From positions 55,304,001 through 55,368,000 of the forward strand of contig NC_043002.1 in the NCBI RefSeq assembly GCF_006345805.1: DNA of 64,000 nucleotides, written 5' to 3'. Positions within the stretch are counted from its first letter, which is position 1. The number at the start of each line of letters is the position of its first letter. The notes beneath the pieces were generated by a model. The model made no database searches and was not told the origin of the DNA. It saw nothing but the letters and a program-made list of their open reading frames with translations. This stretch comes from Octopus sinensis. Its lineage: Eukaryota. The position numbers and the translations under genes were made by a program. Below are positions 11,391-51,629 of this stretch, in pieces.

Positions 11391-11710
11391 TGTGTGCGTG
11401 TGTGTATGTATTCTGTATGCGTGTGTGCATACCAGGATGGTATCGTCAGCAACAGATGTGAATGTATAGAACAGCGTCCTGGTTTTTAAATATATCTAAC
11501 GTTGTGGATTGAACCTGAAAGGTTGTTTGAAGATGCATGCCAGTTTACCAGTCTAAGAAGCTATTAGTAGCTTTTTTCCCCACAATGCATTTACAGACAC
11601 TATTGGTGCCAACATTAAGTGACATTAAGAGGATGCTCATCTTGTCAAGAGTCTAAATCCGTTCCGTGTGTGTATATATATATATATATACACGCTCATA
11701 TACATAGATT

Positions 11711-12699: not shown

Positions 12700-13950
12700 A
12701 ACATGTCATTACAAGTGTTACACAGCACAGACAAAATATATGTTGCAGAGTTCAATTTCAGCTTCAGTTCCTCCTGTGCCTCCGAGCTCACTGGGCAGCA
12801 AGTTGATGCTGCTGGTTTCTGTTGGCTGCAGTTTTCGCTGCACCCATCATACAAAACACATGATATTTGCCTCTCTCATGTCGGTTGTGAATGACCTGCG
12901 CCATGTTGTTTTCGGTCTTTCTCTCTTTTCTCCTCTGAAAGTGTTTTTGAAAGGTGTGTGGCAGATACGAAACCGAATCTTTGAATTTCCGAGTAAGAGT
13001 TACGACATACCCATAATCATTTCACGTGATCGGCCGATTAACTTACCAATCAGAATCAAACCATCACGCGATGCAGCTTTCCAGAATCTTCTAGAACCCC
13101 TCTGACAGGGATTATAAATATAGGAATTTTGGGCGATAAGACTTCAGAATATTGGAGACCTCCGCAAAGAAAACAGCTTTCTCATTTTTGCTTTCATTCT
13201 TCAACCGGAGCAGAAACGGTATAGCAACAATTGTTTTAATAACTACCTATTCAACCAAGCAGTTGACAACCACATATTTTTTTGTTTTCAAATTAACATA
13301 TTACTCCAAACGTGACAATGCAGTCATAGAGCATTAGTAACCAATTATTTTGTTTAAAGTTTGACTCACCCAGTGAGTATAAATTATTATTTGTATTCAT
13401 TTAAAGAACAGCATGGGAAATACTATGTGCAGTGAATAAAACTTCTACTAATTGTTCATGAGGTGTTGTTCATCATTTCCACGCAGCCACCAAACCAGCA
13501 CAGCCACCTTGCGATTCTATAAAATCACTTTCACGACATGTTTTAGAATATTGTGATTCCAGTAACCGGAGAACGTGATTTGTTCGTTTTTATCTTCGAA
13601 CTTGTGTTGGTTCCCTTTGAAATATCTTCATTTGTTATATGGTCTTGCCGCATAATCATTCTTAGAATGGAAGAGCGCTGTGACAATCGATAGAAAGCTA
13701 GATGTGTTCCACCAAAGGATGCTTGAGAAAAAACCAGTAGAACATAGTAATGAAATAATTTAACGGGTGCCAGGCAGGTGAATAAGAAAATCAAATAGCA
13801 ATACCAATAATCTGTATGAAGACTCTACATCCGAAACCAGTAAATCATTAACTAAAGAATTTGAATAAGATAAAATAGGTGCATCATTCACTGAAAACAA
13901 CAAAAGTAGCGAAGCAGTTCTACCCGAATGTTCTTGTGTTCTCAACATTT
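12700..13950 (-). mobile_element. Ancient RTE-like LINE 3' remnant
   Basis: Degenerate motifs in the expected order on the minus strand: RQDHITNEDI, RWLCWFG, RPKTTWRRS. Confidence 0.5.
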
Positions 13951-14275: not shown

Positions 14276-15640
14276 AAGTTGTTACTTATAGCTACAATGT
14301 GTTGAACTGGAATATGAGTGAAGTAAAGAATATAGATAGGAAAATACGCAAGCTGCTGAGTTGTAATAGGATGCACCACCCAAAGGCAGACGTAGATCGC
14401 CTTTAGCTTCCCAGAGCCCAAGGAGGTCGAGGCCTGATCCAATTTGAACTAGCTTACAAAACAACCACAATTGGACTGGCCAAATATCTCGAAATATCGA
14501 ATGACTGGATGCTAAAGCTCGTGGAAAATCACGAGAGGCGAAAGAAGCTTCATTCTATCATAAAGGAAAGCAAAAAATTTGCTATTGATCTCGTGCAGGA
14601 TACCCAAACTGAACAACCCGAGGGAAGTACGGCAACTATTGTTGCAAAGAAGGTGAAAATGATGGCAACGAAAAAAGCGCACGAACAATTGGCTGATAGG
14701 TGGGAGGAGAAACCTCTGCACGGCAAATATGTGACCCGCAGCAAACAAGCTGATGTTGACCAGAAGCAAACCCATCAGTGGCTACGGAGCTCAGGGCTAA
14801 AAGCAGAGAGCGAAGGTTTCATCCTGGCTGCTCAAGATCAAAGCCTATTAACCCGGAACTACCAGGCCAATGTGATGAAAAATGGAGCAGACCCAAAATG
14901 CCGATTCTGCAACGACATGATTGATACAGTGGACCATCTAATCTCTGGATGTAAAGTCTTAGCACCAGTGGAGTATAAATTAAGACATGACAGAGTTGGC
15001 CAATATCTACACTGGCTAATAAGTCGGCATTACAATATCAAAACTGCCGACAAGTGGTATAATCACCACCCTGAGGCTGTAACTGAAGGAGAAAAATGTA
15101 ACCATTCTGTGGGACTTTCCAGTACATACAGACCGAACCATCAAGGCCAATAAACCAGATATTGTTGTGAAAGACCAAAACAATAAAGTTTGCTTATTGA
15201 TCGACATGAGCATCCCCTGTGATCATAATATCACAGCGAAAGAGTTTGACAAGCTCAGAAAATATAAAGACCTACTCATTGAAATTGAGAAAATGTGGCA
15301 TCTCAAGGCGGTTACAATACCAGTGATCGTAGGAGCACTAGGAATGATCAAGAAGGGAACCGAAAATTATATGAGAATGATCCCTGGCTTACCATCCCTG
15401 CAAGAAGTGCAAAAGATTGTCTTAACTGGTACATCACATGTATTGAGAAGAGCATTGTCGTTGTGTGAATTGTTGCTGCTCATGTATTTTAATTTAACTT
15501 AAAAAAAAAATTTTAAAAATGAACGAACTATTGAGTTTGGTTTAATGGCCTACCAATGTATACTATGAGTTTCTTTGCCCTAGAAGTCGGGAAGACACTC
15601 GGCAAGAAATGGAAGCAAATTTGAAAGAAGAAAAAAAGAA
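14276..15640 (+). mobile_element. 5'-truncated R4/Dong-like LINE (family B) within (AAT)n
   Basis: KPLHGKY, AAQDQSLLTRNY, CRFC..DHLISGC (CCHC), RHD, NKPDIVV, LIDMS, KLRKYKDL; one frameshift near 15100. Confidence 0.92.
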
Positions 15641-40203: not shown

Positions 40204-41095
40204 CCCTGATGCAGTACCAGGCAGTGGCTCTCATGGCTTCTGATCTTAACTGATTGGAAGTGTTATCATGTACATTGTTTTGTCTTGGTATAAAAGATGG
40301 GATACAACAAATATTCTGCTCAATACCAGAGGTTTACTTGTCAGTTGTTTGACCTTAACCAGTTGACCATGTCCATTAGTGGCTGACGAAATGTGCATCT
40401 CTGATCACGAGCAGAAGTAGTGGGGGAGCATCATAGCCATATGTTGAGGGGGATTCTTTGGGGTTTGAATAATACACCCCTGGAAACATGGGTGTTTCGT
40501 TCAACATCCTTAAACAACCCTTATTCAGGGACTTTTTGAGCGGGATGGGTTACTCGACCAGAAGAAAATTCTGACTGGGCCCCACCTGCAAGGTCATACG
40601 TCTTGATATGAGATCACCATCTCGCATACATATGGTTATGATGCATGTGCCTAGTGTACCCTCATCAGACGGGTAGTCATGATTGGTATACTGGGTTCAT
40701 ATATTTTACCCCAGTGTCACATTGATGGCATGCACTGCTCTCTCACTCAATAATAATAATGATGATGATGATGATGATGATGATAAAATGCCCTGATGCG
40801 ATACCAGATATTGGCTGTCGTGACTTCTGACCTTAACTGATTGGAAGTGTTATCATGTACATTGCTTTGTCTTGGTGGATGGGTTACAGCAAATATTCTG
40901 CACAATACCACAGATTTGCTTGTCAGTTGTTTGACCATAACCAGCTGAACATGTTTCTTAGTGGCTGACGATATGTGTATCTCTGATCATGAGCAGAAGT
41001 AGTGGGGGAGCATTGAGAGGAATTCTTTGGGGTCTGGATAATTCAACTCTGGAAACATGGGTGTTTTGTTCATCAACCTTCATTTAGGGACATTT
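40200..41095 (+). repeat. Two tandem copies of an unclassified repeat bounded by (AAT)/(GAT) tracts
   Basis: ATGCCCTGATGC...CTTAACTGATTGGAAGTGTTATCATGTACATTG begins at about 40201 and again at about 40788. Confidence 0.7.
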
Positions 41096-43810: not shown

Positions 43811-43817
43811 TATAAAA
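43811..43817 (+). promoter_or_regulatory. TATA box of the secreted-protein gene
   Basis: TATAAAA about 30 nt before a pyrimidine-rich TTTCACTCATCA Inr-like stretch and about 190 nt upstream of the ATG. Confidence 0.6.
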
Positions 43818-43998
43818 AAGGAGCTGTTATGGCTTTCACTCATCACAAACACAAAAGTTTGCATTTGGTCACCATCTCGCCTTGCTAACTATCTTGAAGC
43901 TTCAAATTTACGCCGACTTTACAACAAAACAGCTATCTTTCACACTAAGTAGACATAGCCAACTTTACACTTCACTGACAAAAGCACAAATATCCACA

Positions 43999-44002
43999 AT
44001 GG
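43999..44002 (+). CDS. Coding part of exon 1 (ATG G), phase-1 donor
   Basis: ACAATGG|GTAAGA. The G joins TT of exon 2 to make GTT (Val). Confidence 0.75.
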
Positions 44003-44092
44003 GTAAGATCAGATTTTTCGCTTTCTGTACATTATTTTCTTCTCAGCAAGTAACAATGATTTTTCTTTCTGCTGTTTGTTTTTCTTTTTAGT

Positions 44093-44169
<77 letters not shown>

Positions 44170-45858
44170 ACATACACTTATACAGACACATATCGAAGTA
44201 AAAATAATCTTTGCATTATGCTTGTATCGTTCCAGTTTGCCGTTTCATCACCGTCGTATTGCTATGCAGTTATGCTTTACAAGTCCTTGGTTCACCAATT
44301 CCTTCTGAAACTAATTCTTCGTGGTCCTCAGATGCACTTTTCCATATTGTGCAAGAAACCTCTCATACTACAAAAATTGTAGTTGGAAACGTATTGCAGT
44401 ATTATGTAAGTAATAATTATATGTTAAAATAATAATAATAATTATGGAATGGCGGTTGAGGGACCAACGAAATACCTTGTGGTATTTTGATTTAATTCAT
44501 TTTCTAAGTTCAAATCTCACCAGATTTGACCTTTGTCATTAATCCTTTCTGGGCGATAAGTCAGTAAGTAGGGCTTTATCCTTCCGTGAACGATTGACCA
44601 GTCACTAGTAATATACTGGGGAACAATTTAATCGATTGTGTATGATCGATGGCAATATCGGAAATTACTATGCTGGATGATTCGATTGTTTGTCAGGAAT
44701 AGCAAAATACTGAACCAATTACCTCATCGTATTTTGTTAAGTTTTCAGGTTACGAGATCGAACGACACCAAAGTCAAAGGCATCATTTTTCATCCCTCTA
44801 CGACCATGTCCTGTCTTCTACAACTTTCTAATTTACCAATTGCTAAGACTTTTTCAAATCAATAATTATATCTTGATAAAAATTCTTATAAAAACAACTC
44901 CTAATTATTGAGAGATAAAATACATGAAACACCTCTAATCTATTTTTACCTTGTTTAGCTAATTATGATGTAATTATTATTATGCAATTAACTGAGGTTT
45001 TACCTGTTGTACGATAGATAACTTTGGAAGTATAGTTTTGCCACTAACTTGATAAAAACCTTACTTAATAACTATGATATGTCTGCCATATTTCTTCATA
45101 TCATCCATGGTATGGATGATATGAAGAAAGCTGGCAGAGACGTTAGCAAGCCGGGCAAAATGATTAGTGGTATTTCGTCTGTCTTTATGTTCTGAGTTCA
45201 AATTCCGCTGAGATCGACTTTGCCTTTCATCCTTTCGGGGTCTATAAAATAAATAGAATGTAATCGACTCGCTTCCCCCGCCCCACCCGCTCCCGAAATA
45301 GCTGGCCTTGTGCTAAAATTTGAAACCAATATAATCGTAGCAATTTTAGTGATAAATTCATTTGCAACACATTGCTATAAATTCTTAACTTTGCAAATAC
45401 CAGCGTGCTTTGAAGCGTATCTTCGGAATATATATTCACTACTATAAATATAATTTTCTACGAAAAACGCAGGGCCTGAAATTTTGCGGGATGGAGATAA
45501 TCGATTAATACAACTGGTGCTTATTTCATCGACCCCGAAAGGATGAAAGACAAAATCGATCTCAGGGGAATTTAAACTCAGAACGTAAAAACGGACGACA
45601 TACCGCTAAGCATTTCGCTCGACGTGCTAACGTTTCCGCCAGCTCGCCGTCTTCATTACGATAAATATTGACTATTTTAGAATCTTTTTTTCACTAACAG
45701 TCAACTACTTCGTCATTTATTCCCCTTCCTCTATGATTCTTTTTCATTTTATATGTGTATGTGACGTTCCTTTACTCATTGCCTTCCACCAAGCCTGATA
45801 TGTGCACTTAACTCTGCACCTGTTACGTTAATCCTGTCTGTCTGTCTATCTGTCTGTC

Positions 45859-45956
<98 letters not shown>

Positions 45957-46916
45957 TCTTTCTCCCTCTCTCTCCCTCTTCTTCTTCCATGCCATGTAAA
46001 GTGGAAATGGAGAAATCAACCAACCAACATTTATTCTGTTGCTATTATTATGTAATTAAATATTACATATTATATATTATGTATATTATATTTTCTAGTG
46101 TGACAACATGTGGTACTTTCCCGGTGTTGAATGTAAAGATTTTATCGAGCACCTAACCAATTTAACGAATAAAACTTTTCCCGAATTACACCTGAGAGAA
46201 GATTTGAATTTCACAAACTACGACGATTTCGAGGTATGTTTTTAATGAATATTTCAGTATTTTTACAACTAGCGATTGTTTCATTAGGTCGACGCCTCTA
46301 ACACTCAATATTTTCTTCATCATTGGGGTTGATTTGAAGAAGAAAAGAAGCGGTCATTTTCCCGCAACTCTATAACTCTGGTGGGTTTCATCTGGGATTG
46401 GAAAAGTCCCAATGATTCGGTGGCCTTAGAGTGGGAAACACCATAATGAAATTTTTGTTTTTTAAGTGGGTAACAAGCAAATCGAAAGACTAAGTTTTCG
46501 AAGGATCAACCAAGCTAATGATAACTTTTAACACAAAGAGGATAATCTGATTTAATTCTCTAATCCCGTCTCTTCACGGCAGAGTTAGGCCACCCATTTT
46601 AGGGTCTTGTGCTGTAGCAAAGCAAGAGTTTTGTGCGTCTGAGTATACCTCAGTGACAAGACAATGTTTATAGGAAACGGTAATAAATTGGGAGAACCGG
46701 TAATGGGCTGCAGTAAAAAACATTGCGCTATTCTGTGAATATAAATATGGATTTACATCATTTTGTCCAAGAATGGTGAGGGAGTGTCAGGGTTGCAACA
46801 TTAGCAGACTAAATGTTGGGGTAATATACTGTAATCAAATCAGTCGATTATAAACCAGGCTAAATATATATGGAGAAGTCAGCATGGTCACTAACGAGTT
46901 GTGATATAATAACCAC

Positions 46917-46968
<52 letters not shown>

Positions 46969-47711
46969 TGAATATATGTAAATTTGTGTGACTGCATACA
47001 AACATATATGTATATATTTATACACATACAAGTGTATAAGTATGTATGTGTATGTATGTGTGTGTGTTTTTATTTGTCAAACGTTGGAAAGAAAACGAAT
47101 TCTTGCTTATTTTCCGTTCCATTTACAAGAATGTATCCATTTAGATATACAAGTGTCTGTGACTTATGTATTCTTCAACGCTTCATGCCTTTTTATATAT
47201 ATATATTTTTTATATATTTTATATATCGAAACATGTCTTTATTTCACAATTTCAACTACAGCAGCAATTTCTCGTTATTTCTTCCTCAATCTAGATGGCT
47301 TTAGTAAACATGACCGCCGTAATTTCACAATACAACACCAGTATCGAAAGCCAACTAAACAGAGAACTCAGCTATCTTTGTGCTCCTGCAAAGGAACTCG
47401 GAGTTCCCTGCTATTATCCAAATGCTTGTTTTCAAGGAACTTTCAGTAATGATGCCACATTTTTCTGTCATTTGCGGAATGCCAATTCACTCTTGAAAGA
47501 TCTGAAGCTACTTTTAACGCAGATGGTAAGTATTTCAATGTTAATGGCGACTATATATTTTAACTATTTTGTATCCTTTTGTCTCTCTATTTATTTATCC
47601 GCTTATCTCTCTATAATCGGTCTATTCTATGTATCCATGTATATACATGTATGCATACATAAATACATATATATATATATATATGTATGTAAGTATGTAT
47701 GTATGTATGTA

Positions 47712-47750
<39 letters not shown>

Positions 47751-48034
47751 TCATGTTGGACCGCTGAACTTTACAGTTTTTCTCTCTCCATTTTCCCCCT
47801 TCTTCCTCTCTGTCGAAGAGCATAGGCTCGAAACGTAAAAGACTTTTCCATTTTCCCCGAGCGTTAAACTAATACACCTACTTGTTTTTCCTACACCTGT
47901 CTTCGTCCTTTGTTTTTCTATAAGGTTGAACAATATATATATTTAAATTGATGTAATGATTGCATTGTTCAATTAAATGGAGTTGCTTGAAACGATCGTA
48001 CTACATTACCTCTAGATATCGTTGTTGATTATTT

Positions 48035-48089
<55 letters not shown>

Positions 48090-48714
48090 CATACATACAT
48101 ACATACATACATACATACATACATACATACATACTATTTTCTTACTTGCCTACCTATCGATTTAACCCACCCACTCACCTACCCAGCAATTTCGAGGGAG
48201 GGTCTAAGCTGGTTATATTGACCCCAGGGCACAACTGGTACTTATTTTATCGTCCTCGAAAAAATATTAAAGATATTAACGAAGTAAACGGAAATGTTTT
48301 TGATGAAGCCATGATACGGGATTGGATTTCCCGGAACGCTCTTGCCACACACACACACACACACACATACACACATTACACGTCTTTTCATGTACTCTCT
48401 GTTTCTCCCTCTCTCTCACTCATGCACACACACACATACGCACACTTTTTTCTCTCTTTCCTTCTTCCTTCTCCCACCCCTCGCCAACCAATATATCTAA
48501 CTAAATACCCGATCTTTACATCCGGTTATACCAACTTTAACAAGTAAACCCAATTACTTTATCGTTCTTCTTCTTCTTCTTCTTCTCAAACTTTTTCTGA
48601 CGTTCGTCTCTTTTTATCTCCCGTTCATTAAACTCTATTGACCCCTTATTCTACCTCAAAACACTACAAGTGTGAATGTTCACTTCCTTCTGATCAATAC
48701 CATACCTTATGTGT

Positions 48715-48766
<52 letters not shown>

Positions 48767-49878
48767 GTACGTATATATATATATATATATATATAACGAA
48801 ACCGTTTCATTCAGACTCCTTTGTACTCAGAGTTTCAAGTGTGTGGCTAGTCTTCAGCCATTGTGGTCAGACCCCAATGGTCGAAGACTAGCCACACGTT
48901 TGAAACTCAGAGTAGCAAGGAGTCTGAATCAAACTGTTTTGCTCGATACATGTAACTCCCAATAAATCAATAAATATGTTGGGTGCCCTTCTTTCGTTTG
49001 TCCACAGACTGGTGTAAATTTGTTAAATATTTCTATACATTACACACACACGTGTGTGTATATACATGTATATATCTTTGTGTGTATGTGTGTGTGTTTA
49101 TATGCAATTATATACAATCCATAATATGTCGCCTGCATTAGATTTGAACATACAAACTAATAATCTAGTTATCTTTCAACAGTTAAATAAGATGGGATTT
49201 TATCTTGACCATTCTTTATCATTACGTTTCTCAAAGAAAGTCCGAGCTAATACCAGTTCCATTAACTTTAATCCAAGGAACGTTCTACAAACATCATCCG
49301 TTGTAAAAGATTTCTTTAATCCATTCCTAACACCTCTTGGATGGTTTCAGTTTCTTTAAGAGAATGACAAAATAGAAATTATTTCGGGATTTTGTTGCAG
49401 TGATAAGTGGGAGCAGAGTAAAACTGCTAAGAGTTTCATTGGCTTGTAATATTGAGTTCGAATCGGTAACAGGGAGACAGAAGACATTCTGCAGGACAGC
49501 TGGCTCTACATACATAGATGTAGACGGCGGCGACTCTTCATCAGTATCAATATGCCGTAATGATGATTGTTACAAAACACTTTCCTGTTAAATCGATCTT
49601 CAGAGTTGTTTCGATTGATCAAAATATTTATGGAGAAGCGATTTCAGATGACTTATTATAAACTTCAATCAAATTAATTAAATGATTCACATGTTTTTCT
49701 TTTTTTTTTACTATTTTAGGTAACAACTTACAGTTTTGAAAACACCACCGTTGACAACGATTTATTGGTCAAGTCAGATACCCCTTTGGTATGGAGCCGA
49801 TGGTTTTCAATGGTCACTCTCCATCATCTACAAAATCTACTTAATCAAGTGGATGACAAGCTTCGATTAGAATTTTAA
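43999..49878 (+). CDS. Spliced 5-exon gene for a 232-aa secreted protein; candidate long-chain four-helix (IL-6/G-CSF-like) cytokine
   Basis: Join 43999-44002, 44236-44405, 46099-46233, 47295-47525, 49720-49878 = 699 nt, open frame, all GT-AG introns. Protein: [232 protein letters not shown]. Signal-peptide-like N-terminus, 6 Cys in the mature part, 7 N-X-S/T sequons. The confidence value is for the gene model; the family call is less certain (about 0.6). Confidence 0.85.
44236..44405 (+). CDS. Exon 2: signal peptide and predicted helix A
   Basis: Acceptor TTCCAG|, donor |GTAAGT. Encodes hydrophobic [18 protein letters not shown] followed by SPIP. Confidence 0.85.
46099..46233 (+). CDS. Exon 3 (45 codons): predicted A-B loop
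   Basis: Acceptor TTTTCTAG|, donor |GTATGT, 135 nt open in phase 0. Confidence 0.85.
47295..47525 (+). CDS. Exon 4 (77 codons): predicted helix B, Cys-rich insert and helix C
   Basis: Acceptor CTTCCTCAATCTAG|, donor |GTAAGT, 231 nt open in phase 0. Matches the start of track ORF 47295..47825. Confidence 0.85.
47812..47848 (+). ncRNA. Variant hammerhead-like motif in intron 4, within a short repeat at about 47750-47935
   Basis: CTGTCGA AGAGC-ATAG-GCTC GAAAC GTA: A6 replaced by U and stem I is poor. Confidence 0.45.
48795..48943. repeat. About 150-bp hairpin (MITE-like) in intron 4
   Basis: TTCAGACTCC..CTCAGAGTTTCAAGTGTGTGGCTAGTCTTC / GAAGACTAGCCACACGTTTGAAACTCAGAG..GGAGTCTGAA. Confidence 0.8.
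49720..49878 (+). CDS. Exon 5 coding part (52 aa + TAA): predicted C-D loop and helix D
   Basis: Long poly-T tract then TTTTAG|, open in phase 0 to TAA at 49876-49878, amphipathic C-terminal helix. Confidence 0.85.
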   Translation, partial: VTTYSFENTTVDNDLLVKSDTPLVWSRWFSMVTLHHLQNLLNQVDDKLRLEF

Positions 49879-50238
49879 TCAAATATTTCAGATGTGTGAG
49901 CGCGCGCGTGTGTATGCGCATGTGTGTATTGTTTGAAAATTATGTATTTATCATTTTAAATTAATATTTATATATAACTTATAGCGAGCACCGTAAAAGA
50001 GGGAAGAAATGGCCAATCATTTCCGCGATACGGAATTAATAGTCTATACTCTGTCACTTCACCTACGCTGCTAATACCCCTGGGAAAGGTATGAACGCTA
50101 CCGTTTCCACATCAGATTTCTTCTGAAAACATATAGGGCATATGTTTGTCATTGAACGTCGAGAAAAAAGATCAATATTTATATAAACTACATTATGAAT
50201 GAAAAGATATATTTTTGTAAATCAATTTTTTAAATAAT

Positions 50239-50244
50239 AATAAA
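50239..50244 (+). terminator. Likely polyadenylation signal
   Basis: AATAAA 360 nt after the stop codon, followed by a GT-rich TTGTTTGTTTGTTT downstream element. Confidence 0.5.
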
Positions 50245-51629
50245 TTTACGTAAATCAATTCACTTGTTTGTTTGTTTCGTTATTCTTTTGGTTTTCTCAG
50301 ATTATTGGAGTCGAAATTAATTCCTTATAGAAATAAGCAGAAGAAAAGGCTCAAAGAGCCACGTAGAGGCTGAAAGCCTCTATAGATAGCTCTCGCTGAA
50401 AAGATGGGCTCAGTAAAGTGTCGCTTGAATACAGGTCTAAGTTTAATCGACCCAGGTCGGGTCACCTGGACGAGGTTTATGTTGTAAGACTCCGACTGCG
50501 TTCGCTGCCGGAATCCATCTTCACATCTTTGAATTGGACCTTAGTCTCAATTCAGGTGGCGCTTATGTGACGCTGCTGGAGACTGTGGTCAAACCATGAA
50601 TGGAGAAGCTTGTTGCTAGAAAGCTATATGTGTGGCAAAGAGTGAGAAGTGGTTAGATTCTTCAAGCTAACGCCTTACAGGGGATCCTTGCTGTAGAGAT
50701 ATAACTGTGACTTTGAGAGGTGTACACTATTTGTACTTGAGTGATTTTCTGTGGTAAAGGTGGCAACAAAACCTGTAACAATACAACCATAATTAGCAAC
50801 AGCAACATCAACGGATCCAACGAGTCTACCTCAACGCTTCTAGTACATCCTACAAGATATACTAACCAAAGATCCCTCGAAACACACGTTTCTGTCTTTA
50901 ATGTAAAAACACATTGTTATAGAAATATAAAAAAACAGCAGAAGAATACATAGTCACTCGATTCTATCTGTCGCCAAAGTATGCTTAATGCCACATCTCT
51001 CATGGACATAGCATCAGAAAGTTTCTATCCGGCTAACTTACAACAGGAATGGTGCACCAAGGACTTAGACATATTTGGTGTCTTGAATTTTGAGAAAATC
51101 TAATATGTTTAATCATCTTGAGAAAAAACATTCAGGTGGTGCTATTAAGTTAGACATGGCCTGGACCAATCTTTGGTCGAAACATATCTAAGTTTATCTA
51201 ATTAAGTTATAAACAAATATAAACAAATATAATTAACAAAGCAACGCATGGACTGGTTTCCTTTATCTTTGCGACTATTTTCTTTTGTTTTATCAGTTTT
51301 CATGAGAAATTTAATATTTTAATTCTATTTTCATACGAAGAGCGTCAGTAATTTTCTTTTCTCGATGTTCAGTCTCTCCTGGAATGTTTGAGGACCACTT
51401 GAAGAGGCAGTTATATCTACTCAAACAGTTAAGATTGTAATTTGTACCATTAGCTTGCCTGTGAACACTGCGTCCTTAAAAAATCACATGCTTTTTGACT
51501 TTATATTCCTAGCATCGCCCATTCACCCTTTCATTTTTATGGTTCTTTGAATTTTCACTTTTCTGTTTTCGTTTTTCCTGTATACTATACATGTGCTTTT
51601 AGCTATTATTGCTATCATTCTTTACTTCA

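Follow-up and report, generated by a model that had tools for sequence, protein, structure and literature searches.

An octopus gene family with a predicted long-chain helical cytokine fold and an exon architecture like that of vertebrate IL6, CSF3 and GH1

The class-I helical cytokines typified by IL-6, G-CSF and growth hormone (GH) are regarded as a vertebrate feature, and the locus described here raises the question of whether an invertebrate gene could share their fold and their gene structure by descent. The window, a 64,000-nucleotide (nt) stretch of octopus DNA (contig NC_043002.1, positions 55,304,001 to 55,368,000, forward strand), contains at positions 43,999 to 49,878 a five-exon gene for a secreted protein of 232 amino acids (aa), in whose architecture the original prediction had seen a mirror image of IL6 and of the GH and prolactin (PRL) genes. 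Our analysis of the predicted structure of this protein and of its relatives suggests a new, sequence-orphan family with the fold and the gene structure of long-chain class-I cytokines, and a candidate for the 'missing' molluscan helical cytokine ligand. A 2026 survey placed IL-6-family ligands in vertebrates only, and described molluscs as having IL6R-like receptors, JAK and STAT 'in the absence of a canonical IL6 ligand' (PMC13203501). The literature consulted, whose coverage was incomplete, contained no account of such a long-chain helical cytokine from a cephalopod or other mollusc; an earlier description is possible.

Splicing of the five intervals yielded an intact 699-nt open reading frame (ORF) with a 232-aa product (MVCRF...RLEF). 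The coding exons measure 4, 170, 135, 231 and 159 nt, and their cumulative lengths give intron phases of 1, 0, 0 and 0, exactly as originally predicted. The gene is laid out as follows:

43811..43818, + strand: putative TATA box (TATAAAAA) of a putative promoter, about 188 nt 5' of the ATG, recognized by inspection of the sequence alone.
43999..44002, + strand: coding part of exon 1 (ATG G), in the Kozak-like context CCACAATGG and followed by the donor GTAAG; phase 1.
44003..44235, + strand: intron 1, 233 nt, phase 1, within codon 2 of the signal peptide.
44236..44405, + strand: exon 2, 170 nt, aa 2-58; the remaining signal peptide and helix A to residue 58.
44406..46098, + strand: intron 2, 1693 nt, phase 0, directly before Cys59.
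46099..46233, + strand: exon 3, 135 nt, aa 59-103; the Cys59 codon first, then the C-x10-C loop, mini-helix 70-81 and the A-B loop.
46234..47294, + strand: intron 3, 1061 nt, phase 0.
47295..47525, + strand: exon 4, 231 nt, aa 104-180; helix B, the Cys-rich B-C loop and helix C.
47526..49719, + strand: intron 4, 2194 nt, phase 0.
49720..49878, + strand: coding part of exon 5, 159 nt including the TAA, aa 181-232; the C-D loop and helix D.
49879..50262, + strand: putative 3' untranslated region (3'UTR), 384 nt, with four ATTTA motifs and AATAAA at 50239; its end is placed by the poly(A) signal alone.

All four introns are bounded by GT..AG, with donors resembling GTAAG or GTATG and with acceptors that combine a pyrimidine-rich tract and AG. 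The minute exon 1, with its 4 coding nt, is required because exon 2 has no in-frame ATG, and an alternative start in or before exon 2 was rejected, an in-frame ATG being absent there. The junction CCACAATGG/GTAAGATCAGA is conserved in O. sinensis, whose RefSeq model has the identical ATGG/GTAAGATCAGA. The four ATTTA motifs of the putative 3'UTR compare with a window mean of 1.0, at least four occurring in just 2.4% of equal-sized windows. Judged from its sequence, the interval is one intact gene of the expressed type, running from a TATA box through five coding exons to a poly(A) signal; a second copy of the family was sought in the window and none was found.

The encoded protein begins with a hydrophobic signal peptide, called by inspection together with its cleavage site at about G20/S21 (VLG/SPIP), and the mature chain carries seven N-glycosylation sequons and six cysteines (59, 70, 132, 142, 148 and 161, with none beyond 161), of which the C59/C70 pair (C-x10-C) follows helix A at the start of exon 3. 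With an alignment of 18 family sequences, AlphaFold2 returned a model with a predicted local distance difference test score (pLDDT) of 81.1 and a predicted template modelling score (pTM) of 0.77, in which four main helices of 26-33 residues (A 33-61, B 99-131, C 155-180 and D 203-230) and a mini-helix (70-81) are joined by loops, of which those between A and B (37 aa) and between C and D (22 aa) are long. The exon-to-helix layout that had been read from the sequence was borne out in this model, with the signal peptide and helix A in exon 2, the A-B loop in exon 3, helices B and C in exon 4, and the C-D loop and helix D in exon 5; exon 3 also encodes the first 5 residues of helix B.

A Foldseek search of the PDB with the model retrieved exclusively long-chain class-I cytokines at ranks 1-45, with probabilities of up to 1.00 and with template modelling scores, TM(target), of 0.69-0.80 for G-CSF, 0.71 for LIF, 0.68 for IL-6, 0.68 for IL-11 and 0.62 for PRL, the further cytokine matches including GH, IL-27p28, CLCF1, CNTF, IL-23p19 and leptin; from rank 46 onward the TM fell to 0.2-0.3. 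These matches are not generic helical noise, because a control search of a viral structure library, at similar E-values, gave unrelated proteins only, with TM 0.1-0.3 and probabilities <0.25. The gene product is therefore predicted to be a secreted glycoprotein folding as a long-chain four-helix bundle (up-up-down-down) of the IL-6/G-CSF/GH-like kind. It also resembles long-chain class-I cytokines in its length (232 aa, in a range of about 150-280) and its signal peptide, the four-helix bundle being a predicted feature only.

When the introns were mapped onto the helices, along the lines of the check proposed with the original prediction, those of the octopus gene fell at sites structurally equivalent to those of IL6, CSF3 and GH1:

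Octopus intron 2, between residues 58 and 59: 3 residues short of the C-terminal end of helix A, with Cys59 directly following (AlphaFold2 model).
Octopus intron 3, between residues 103 and 104: 5 residues into helix B (AlphaFold2 model).
Octopus intron 4, between residues 180 and 181: exactly at the C-terminal end of helix C (AlphaFold2 model).
IL6 introns, at E70/T71-C72, E108/E109 and K157/A158: close to where helix A ends, where helix B begins and where helix C ends (verified sequence with the exon sizes given below).

The IL6 exon sizes of 19, 191, 114, 147 and 168 nt have a sum that fits the verified 212-codon precursor. In GH1 the introns lie at 31/32, 71/72 and 126/127, compared with an end of helix 1 at 34, a start of helix 2 at 72 and an end of helix 3 at 128. 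Intron 2 of CSF3 is located at L35/C36, since the isoforms 1GNC and 1RHG differ by a VSE insert exactly there, which arises from alternative donors at the end of CSF3 exon 2; the CSF3 exon sizes of 40, 155 (164), 108, 147 and 165 nt place the next introns at about 71/72 and about 120/121, compared with helices B at 71-91 and C at 100-123. On the predicted model, then, the three domain introns agree with the sites in IL6, CSF3 and GH1 within about 5 residues and in phase. In the octopus gene, as in CSF3, exon 3 opens with the first Cys of a small loop where helix A ends, and IL6 is one residue off. The tiny first exon is the weakest point of the comparison: its early phase-1 position in the signal peptide is shared, but its size, 4 or 10 coding nt in the octopus genes, differs from the approximately 10-40 of the vertebrate ones. 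The five-exon, 1-0-0-0 layout given for IL6, CSF3 and GH/PRL in the original prediction was right, as seen in GH1 exon 3, whose last base is c.291 (phase 0) and whose product, aa 32-71, is the loop joining helices 1 and 2 (PMC6878336), and in CSF3 exon 3, which opens at Cys36.

This architecture is conserved among orthologues and paralogues. Only two direct protein matches were found in a collection of 5.8 billion sequences, LOC115212847 of O. sinensis (228 aa, 62% identity over the full length) and LOC128248029 of O. bimaculoides (171 aa, 91% identity). Both loci are collinear with the window, their introns showing about 85-88% nucleotide identity to it, so that the window derives from a third octopus, which is closer to O. 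bimaculoides, with a synonymous divergence (dS) of 0.11, than to O. sinensis. The O. sinensis orthologue, annotated independently in RefSeq, has exons of 4, 155, 135, 231 and 162 nt, an exon 1 that reads ATGG/GTAAGA and phases 1-0-0-0; its tblastn match to exon 2 lies at L001:10172-10327. The O. bimaculoides model is truncated, with a Met inside exon 3 as its start, because an assembly gap covers exons 1-2: a run of N at L002:7883-8296 (CM046606.1), corresponding to window positions 43957-44487, spans both. We therefore rejected the truncated model as evidence against exons 1-2. Three octopus paralogues are just 26-32% identical to the window protein, yet their introns fall in identical alignment columns, with exon sets of 10/158/135/231/159, 10/170/126/219/156 and 10/146/132/231/168 nt, all in phases 1-0-0-0.

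The same structure recurs across the family. Every octopus member with a full gene model has five exons in phases 1-0-0-0, exon 4 measures 231 nt in nearly all family members, and exon 3 opens with a Cys codon in every octopus paralogue and in a cuttlefish transcript. The latter, the Logan RNA contig L008, is 99-100% identical to the genome of Acanthosepion pharaonis (L003), onto which it splices as 11525-11656 / 12874-13104 / 13587 onwards, with exon 3 starting TGT. Introns 3 and 4 thus have RNA-level support from the cuttlefish, and the comparison of cuttlefish intron positions that had been proposed as a check gave spliced exon 3/4 and 4/5 junctions and an exon 3 that opens at its Cys codon. 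Because the introns occupy equivalent sites and the fold independently retrieves the same cytokines, the architecture is real, family-wide and, as the original prediction held, evidence of homology that is independent of sequence similarity.

A profile search of 1.84 billion representatives returned 18 proteins at E<=0.001, and every named member is from a cephalopod and is labelled 'uncharacterized' or an equivalent placeholder. The species include O. sinensis, O. vulgaris, O. bimaculoides, Argonauta hians and the cuttlefish Acanthosepion pharaonis, and the members share the exon 4 motif LCAPA....C.YP.AC....D..FYC.LR. The O. sinensis copies are scattered on one chromosome at about 3.8, 55.5 and 58.3 Mb, tens of Mb apart rather than in tandem. 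Between the window and O. sinensis, dS was 0.32 and the nonsynonymous divergence (dN) 0.24, a dN/dS of 0.75, with exon 3 the fastest (1.36), exon 5 at 1.14 and exon 4 the most conserved (0.34); amino-acid divergence (38%) exceeded the nucleotide divergence of the introns (about 15%). By these sequence comparisons the genes are a fast-evolving multigene family, so far coleoid-only (octopuses, argonaut and cuttlefish). The dN/dS pattern may point to positive selection acting on the surfaces of the loops and of helix D, and such fast change, with 62% identity between congeners, could account for both the absent sequence signal and the non-detection outside coleoids.

Several members have peculiarities of their own. 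The paralogue LOC118763924 (L004, O. sinensis CM016864.1, 55.53 Mb) lies within the span, apparently in an intron, of a minus-strand gene covering the whole 23.6-kb locus. An O. vulgaris protein (P0003, CAI9724409, 335 aa) carries two tandem copies of the sequence of exons 3 and 4, in three matched stretches, and would represent either a local exon or gene duplication or the fused annotation of two neighbouring paralogues. In the cuttlefish transcript, the 5' exon (L008:1-121) ends ...TTG TGA right before the Cys codon of exon 3 and did not map within 10 kb upstream; it could belong to an exon-2-skipped or non-productive isoform or to a degenerating copy, and the in-frame TGA is read as Trp in the Logan gene call (P0010). 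The deposited cuttlefish model (P0012) is mis-spliced at its 3' end, where the transcript gives a normal exon 5 ending ...FFQKVMKS*.

How much of this agreement in architecture chance alone might produce depends on what is counted. The phase pattern 1-0-0-0 by itself is expected in about 2-3% of four-intron genes and is not rare, which upholds the caveat attached to the original prediction that such a pattern is common by chance; the caveat does not extend to position and phase together, which are rare (6x10^-5 to 4x10^-3). In simulations, three introns were placed within +-5 codons of the vertebrate ranges in 0.16% (uniform placement) to 0.43% (realistic exon lengths) of cases, and in 6x10^-5 to 1.6x10^-4 when phase 0 was demanded at each intron. 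These figures use helix limits that were verified only in part and exclude the freedom of choosing the comparison post hoc, and a fair order of magnitude for chance would be about 10^-3. Genes for secreted proteins most often have phase-1 introns, rather than phase-0 ones, and their surplus of phase 1 is found close to the cleavage site instead of at codons 2-4 (PMC1626468).

A number of results weigh against placing these proteins among the vertebrate cytokines' relatives, beginning with the sequence comparisons. Searches of Pfam (E<=10) with the window protein and the 18 aligned members gave no match, including to IL6 (PF00489) and PF00103; phmmer and profile searches of PDB sequences found no relative; and hhalign comparison of the family profile with human G-CSF and IL-6 gave probabilities <1% (0.09% for IL-6). 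The IL-6/G-CSF/MGF signature, C-x(9)-C-x(6)-G-L-x(2)-[FY]-x(3)-L (PMC5716431), was absent by regular-expression search from the window protein and from all fetched family members, the same expression matching human IL-6 at residue 101 as a positive control. Among the 18 representatives at E<=0.001, none was found outside coleoid cephalopods. The structural evidence has weak points as well: the AlphaFold2 alignment was shallow (an effective number of sequences, Neff, of about 3), two of the five models had a pLDDT of 55-57 and a run with 3 sequences gave a pLDDT of 41, while the Foldseek E-values ranged from 0.1 to 2, the best (0.1) falling short of 0.001. The cysteine pattern also differs. The C59/C70 pair occupies the place of the small disulphide loop that follows helix A in IL-6 and G-CSF, but its spacing is C-x10-C against C-x5-C in CSF3. 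The second conserved disulphide of that family, a link from the A-B loop to helix B, has no counterpart, and the C-x9-C with which helix B of CSF3 begins is missing. The B-C loop has 23 residues and four Cys, far more than the 4-8 residues of this loop in IL-6 and G-CSF. Finally, the helix limits of the vertebrate proteins and the exon sizes of IL6 and CSF3 used for the comparison were verified only in part.

By these sequence tests the family is not a member of the IL-6/G-CSF family of Pfam, and membership of somatotropin/prolactin (PF00103) finds no support either, with no hidden Markov model match and with the GH/PRL disulphides absent, including the small C-terminal loop. In the insignificant hhalign alignment with IL-6, intron 3 of the octopus gene and that of IL6 happen to lie one residue apart, which has the value of an anecdote only.

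Taking both sides together, we consider it fairly probable that the class-I long-chain helical cytokines have a divergent protostome branch in this family, which has kept the ancestral gene structure, and the balance tips slightly towards common ancestry with the vertebrate cytokines as such. Under this reading, the ancestral features retained would be an early intron in the signal peptide, followed by phase-0 introns that lie just short of the helix A terminus, where helix B begins and where helix C ends. The protein might act as an extracellular ligand that bridges the cytokine-binding modules of a gp130-, Domeless- or IL6R-like receptor and so activates JAK-STAT. Exon 4, with helices B and C and a B-C loop presumably rich in disulphides, would form the conserved core, and the receptor-contact surfaces would come from exons 3 and 5, which evolve fast and encode the A-B loop, the C-D loop and helix D; the AU-rich 3'UTR suggests a short-lived, inducible mRNA. 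A broader proposition, which we regard as evenly poised, is that coleoids hold true IL-6/G-CSF/GH-type homologues with the ancestral five-exon, 1-0-0-0 structure, that fold and architecture predate the protostome-deuterostome split, and that these proteins are the ligand set for the molluscan orphan gp130/IL6R-like receptors and JAK-STAT. The original prediction had gone as far as to push the architecture back to the bilaterian ancestor, an extrapolation that is not established by a family found only in coleoid cephalopods.

A somewhat unlikely alternative is that the family is a cephalopod invention that converged on the fold, the introns matching by chance or through a general tendency of exon borders to fall at helix ends, with no common ancestry. 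Such convergence would be consistent with the lack of sequence or profile similarity, the missing signature, the different Cys pattern, the coleoid-only range and the non-significant Foldseek E-values, and also with a phase pattern expected in 2-3% of genes and a positional match that alone reaches up to 0.4% with realistic exon lengths. However, position and phase coincide at only about 10^-4 in the simulation, and phase 0 is not favoured in secreted proteins. Exon 3 opens at the first Cys of the helix-A-end loop as in CSF3, with the Cys of IL6 one residue later, and the fold matches are restricted to long-chain cytokines, not generic bundles. The lost sequence signal, moreover, is explained by a very high rate of change, as indicated by the low identity between congeners.

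A related explanation, which we hold to be improbable, accepts the fold and the ancestry but not the immune role, and would make the protein a (neuro)endocrine hormone of the GH/PRL/leptin type, or else a secreted exocrine product, reproductive, salivary or of another kind, that evolves fast for other reasons. The fold matches do include GH, PRL and leptin, the GH1 gene layout is as close as that of IL6, and a dN/dS >1 in two exons is typical also of reproductive and venom proteins. Nevertheless, the best TM values were to G-CSF, IL-6 and LIF and not to GH or PRL, the C-terminal disulphides of GH/PRL are absent, and an ATTTA-rich 3'UTR is more typical of inducible cytokine mRNAs, although this is weak evidence in an AT-rich genome. 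That the gene is an artefact of unrelated ORF fragments or a dead copy is scarcely credible, since the truncated O. bimaculoides model reflects the assembly gap over exons 1-2 and, despite the in-frame TGA in the 5' exon of the cuttlefish transcript, the frame is intact with consensus splice sites, every exon keeps its frame in two further octopus genomes, exon 4 has a low dN/dS (0.34) and the family alignment gives a confident fold.

The introns of the window gene are rich in repeats. Each contains long microsatellites, (AC)42, (CTGT)21, (TA)18, (TATG)15, (TATA)27, (ATAC)24 and (TG)29, located at 44094-44177, 45834-45952, 46918-46980, 47640-47748, 48039-48134 and 48710-48768, with the (AC)42 array in intron 1; several are complementary to one another between introns. 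Intron 2 carries 124-nt inverted repeats at 45129-45252 and 45521-45644, 85% complementary and separated by 268 nt, and this unit recurs elsewhere in the O. bimaculoides and O. sinensis loci and looks like a short interspersed nuclear element (SINE) or a miniature inverted-repeat transposable element (MITE). Intron 4 includes a near-perfect hairpin at 48787-48951, with two 82-nt arms, 82% complementary and 1 nt apart, flanked by (TG)n and (TA)n arrays, which resembles a foldback or MITE-like insertion. Elsewhere in the window, positions 40600-40680 on the - strand share 78% identity with the first 26 aa of P0019, an old UniRef model of an O. bimaculoides paralogue; this stretch is probably a repeat-derived, spurious first exon of that model and not part of the octopus cytokine-like gene. 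A 214-aa ORF at 14509-15153 on the + strand has a weak zf-RVT match (E 0.001, below the Pfam cutoff) and is probably a retroelement remnant, and no match above the Pfam cutoff came from the remaining long window ORFs that were tested.

If descent from a common ancestral cytokine is correct, the beginnings of this class of cytokines, or at a minimum those of its gene structure, would date from before the bilaterian split, and comparative immunology and endocrinology would gain concrete ligands testable on octopus receptors and cells. Even if convergent, the family would represent a clean and unusual case of unannotated, fast-evolving secreted four-helix-bundle proteins in animals whose immune signalling is poorly known.

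Among known systems, possible analogues in function are the Unpaired proteins (Upd1-3) of Drosophila, to our knowledge the only accepted protostome helical JAK-STAT ligands, which are larger, at about 400 aa. Upd1-3 are secreted, glycosylated and predicted to be helical, and act on the gp130-like receptor Domeless (PMC13203501). The likeness to the octopus protein is proposed as a functional analogy, no similarity having emerged in any search.

GH and PRL lack sequence similarity to the octopus protein and gave lower TM values than G-CSF or IL-6, and their large-loop and small C-terminal-loop disulphides are absent from it, with no Cys in helix D or at the C-terminus. They nonetheless share the fold (1bp3, 1rw5 and 3n06, TM(target) 0.5-0.62), the five-exon 1-0-0-0 structure and an exon 3 that encodes the helix 1-2 loop. 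The first coding exon of GH1 measures 10 nt, equal to that of the octopus paralogues.

For IL-6, the lamprey and hagfish IL-6-like genes were found in 2026 by the same logic of predicted fold and gene structure (PMC13081863). The octopus gene, unlike IL6, lies outside the vertebrates, has no Pfam IL6 match, no signature and no synteny evidence, and was far from IL-6 in the hhalign comparison. It is like IL6 in its fold (TM(target) 0.68), in its introns (in IL6, intron 2 precedes Cys72 by one residue near the end of helix A, and introns 3 and 4 fall where helix B begins and where helix C ends), in its AU-rich 3'UTR and in its fast sequence evolution.

The closest likeness in predicted structure is to CSF3. 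Its gene has five coding exons in phases 1-0-0-0, with a first coding exon of about 40 nt. The octopus gene differs in a first coding exon of 4-10 nt, in the seven N-glycosylation sequons of its product and in having no detectable sequence similarity, whereas G-CSF structures are its best matches (TM(target) 0.69-0.80) and both products are secreted long-chain four-helix bundles, that of the octopus by prediction. In the two genes alike, exon 3 opens at the first Cys of the small loop at the end of helix A (L35/C36 in CSF3), exon 4 encodes helices B and C, and exon 5 encodes the C-D loop and helix D.

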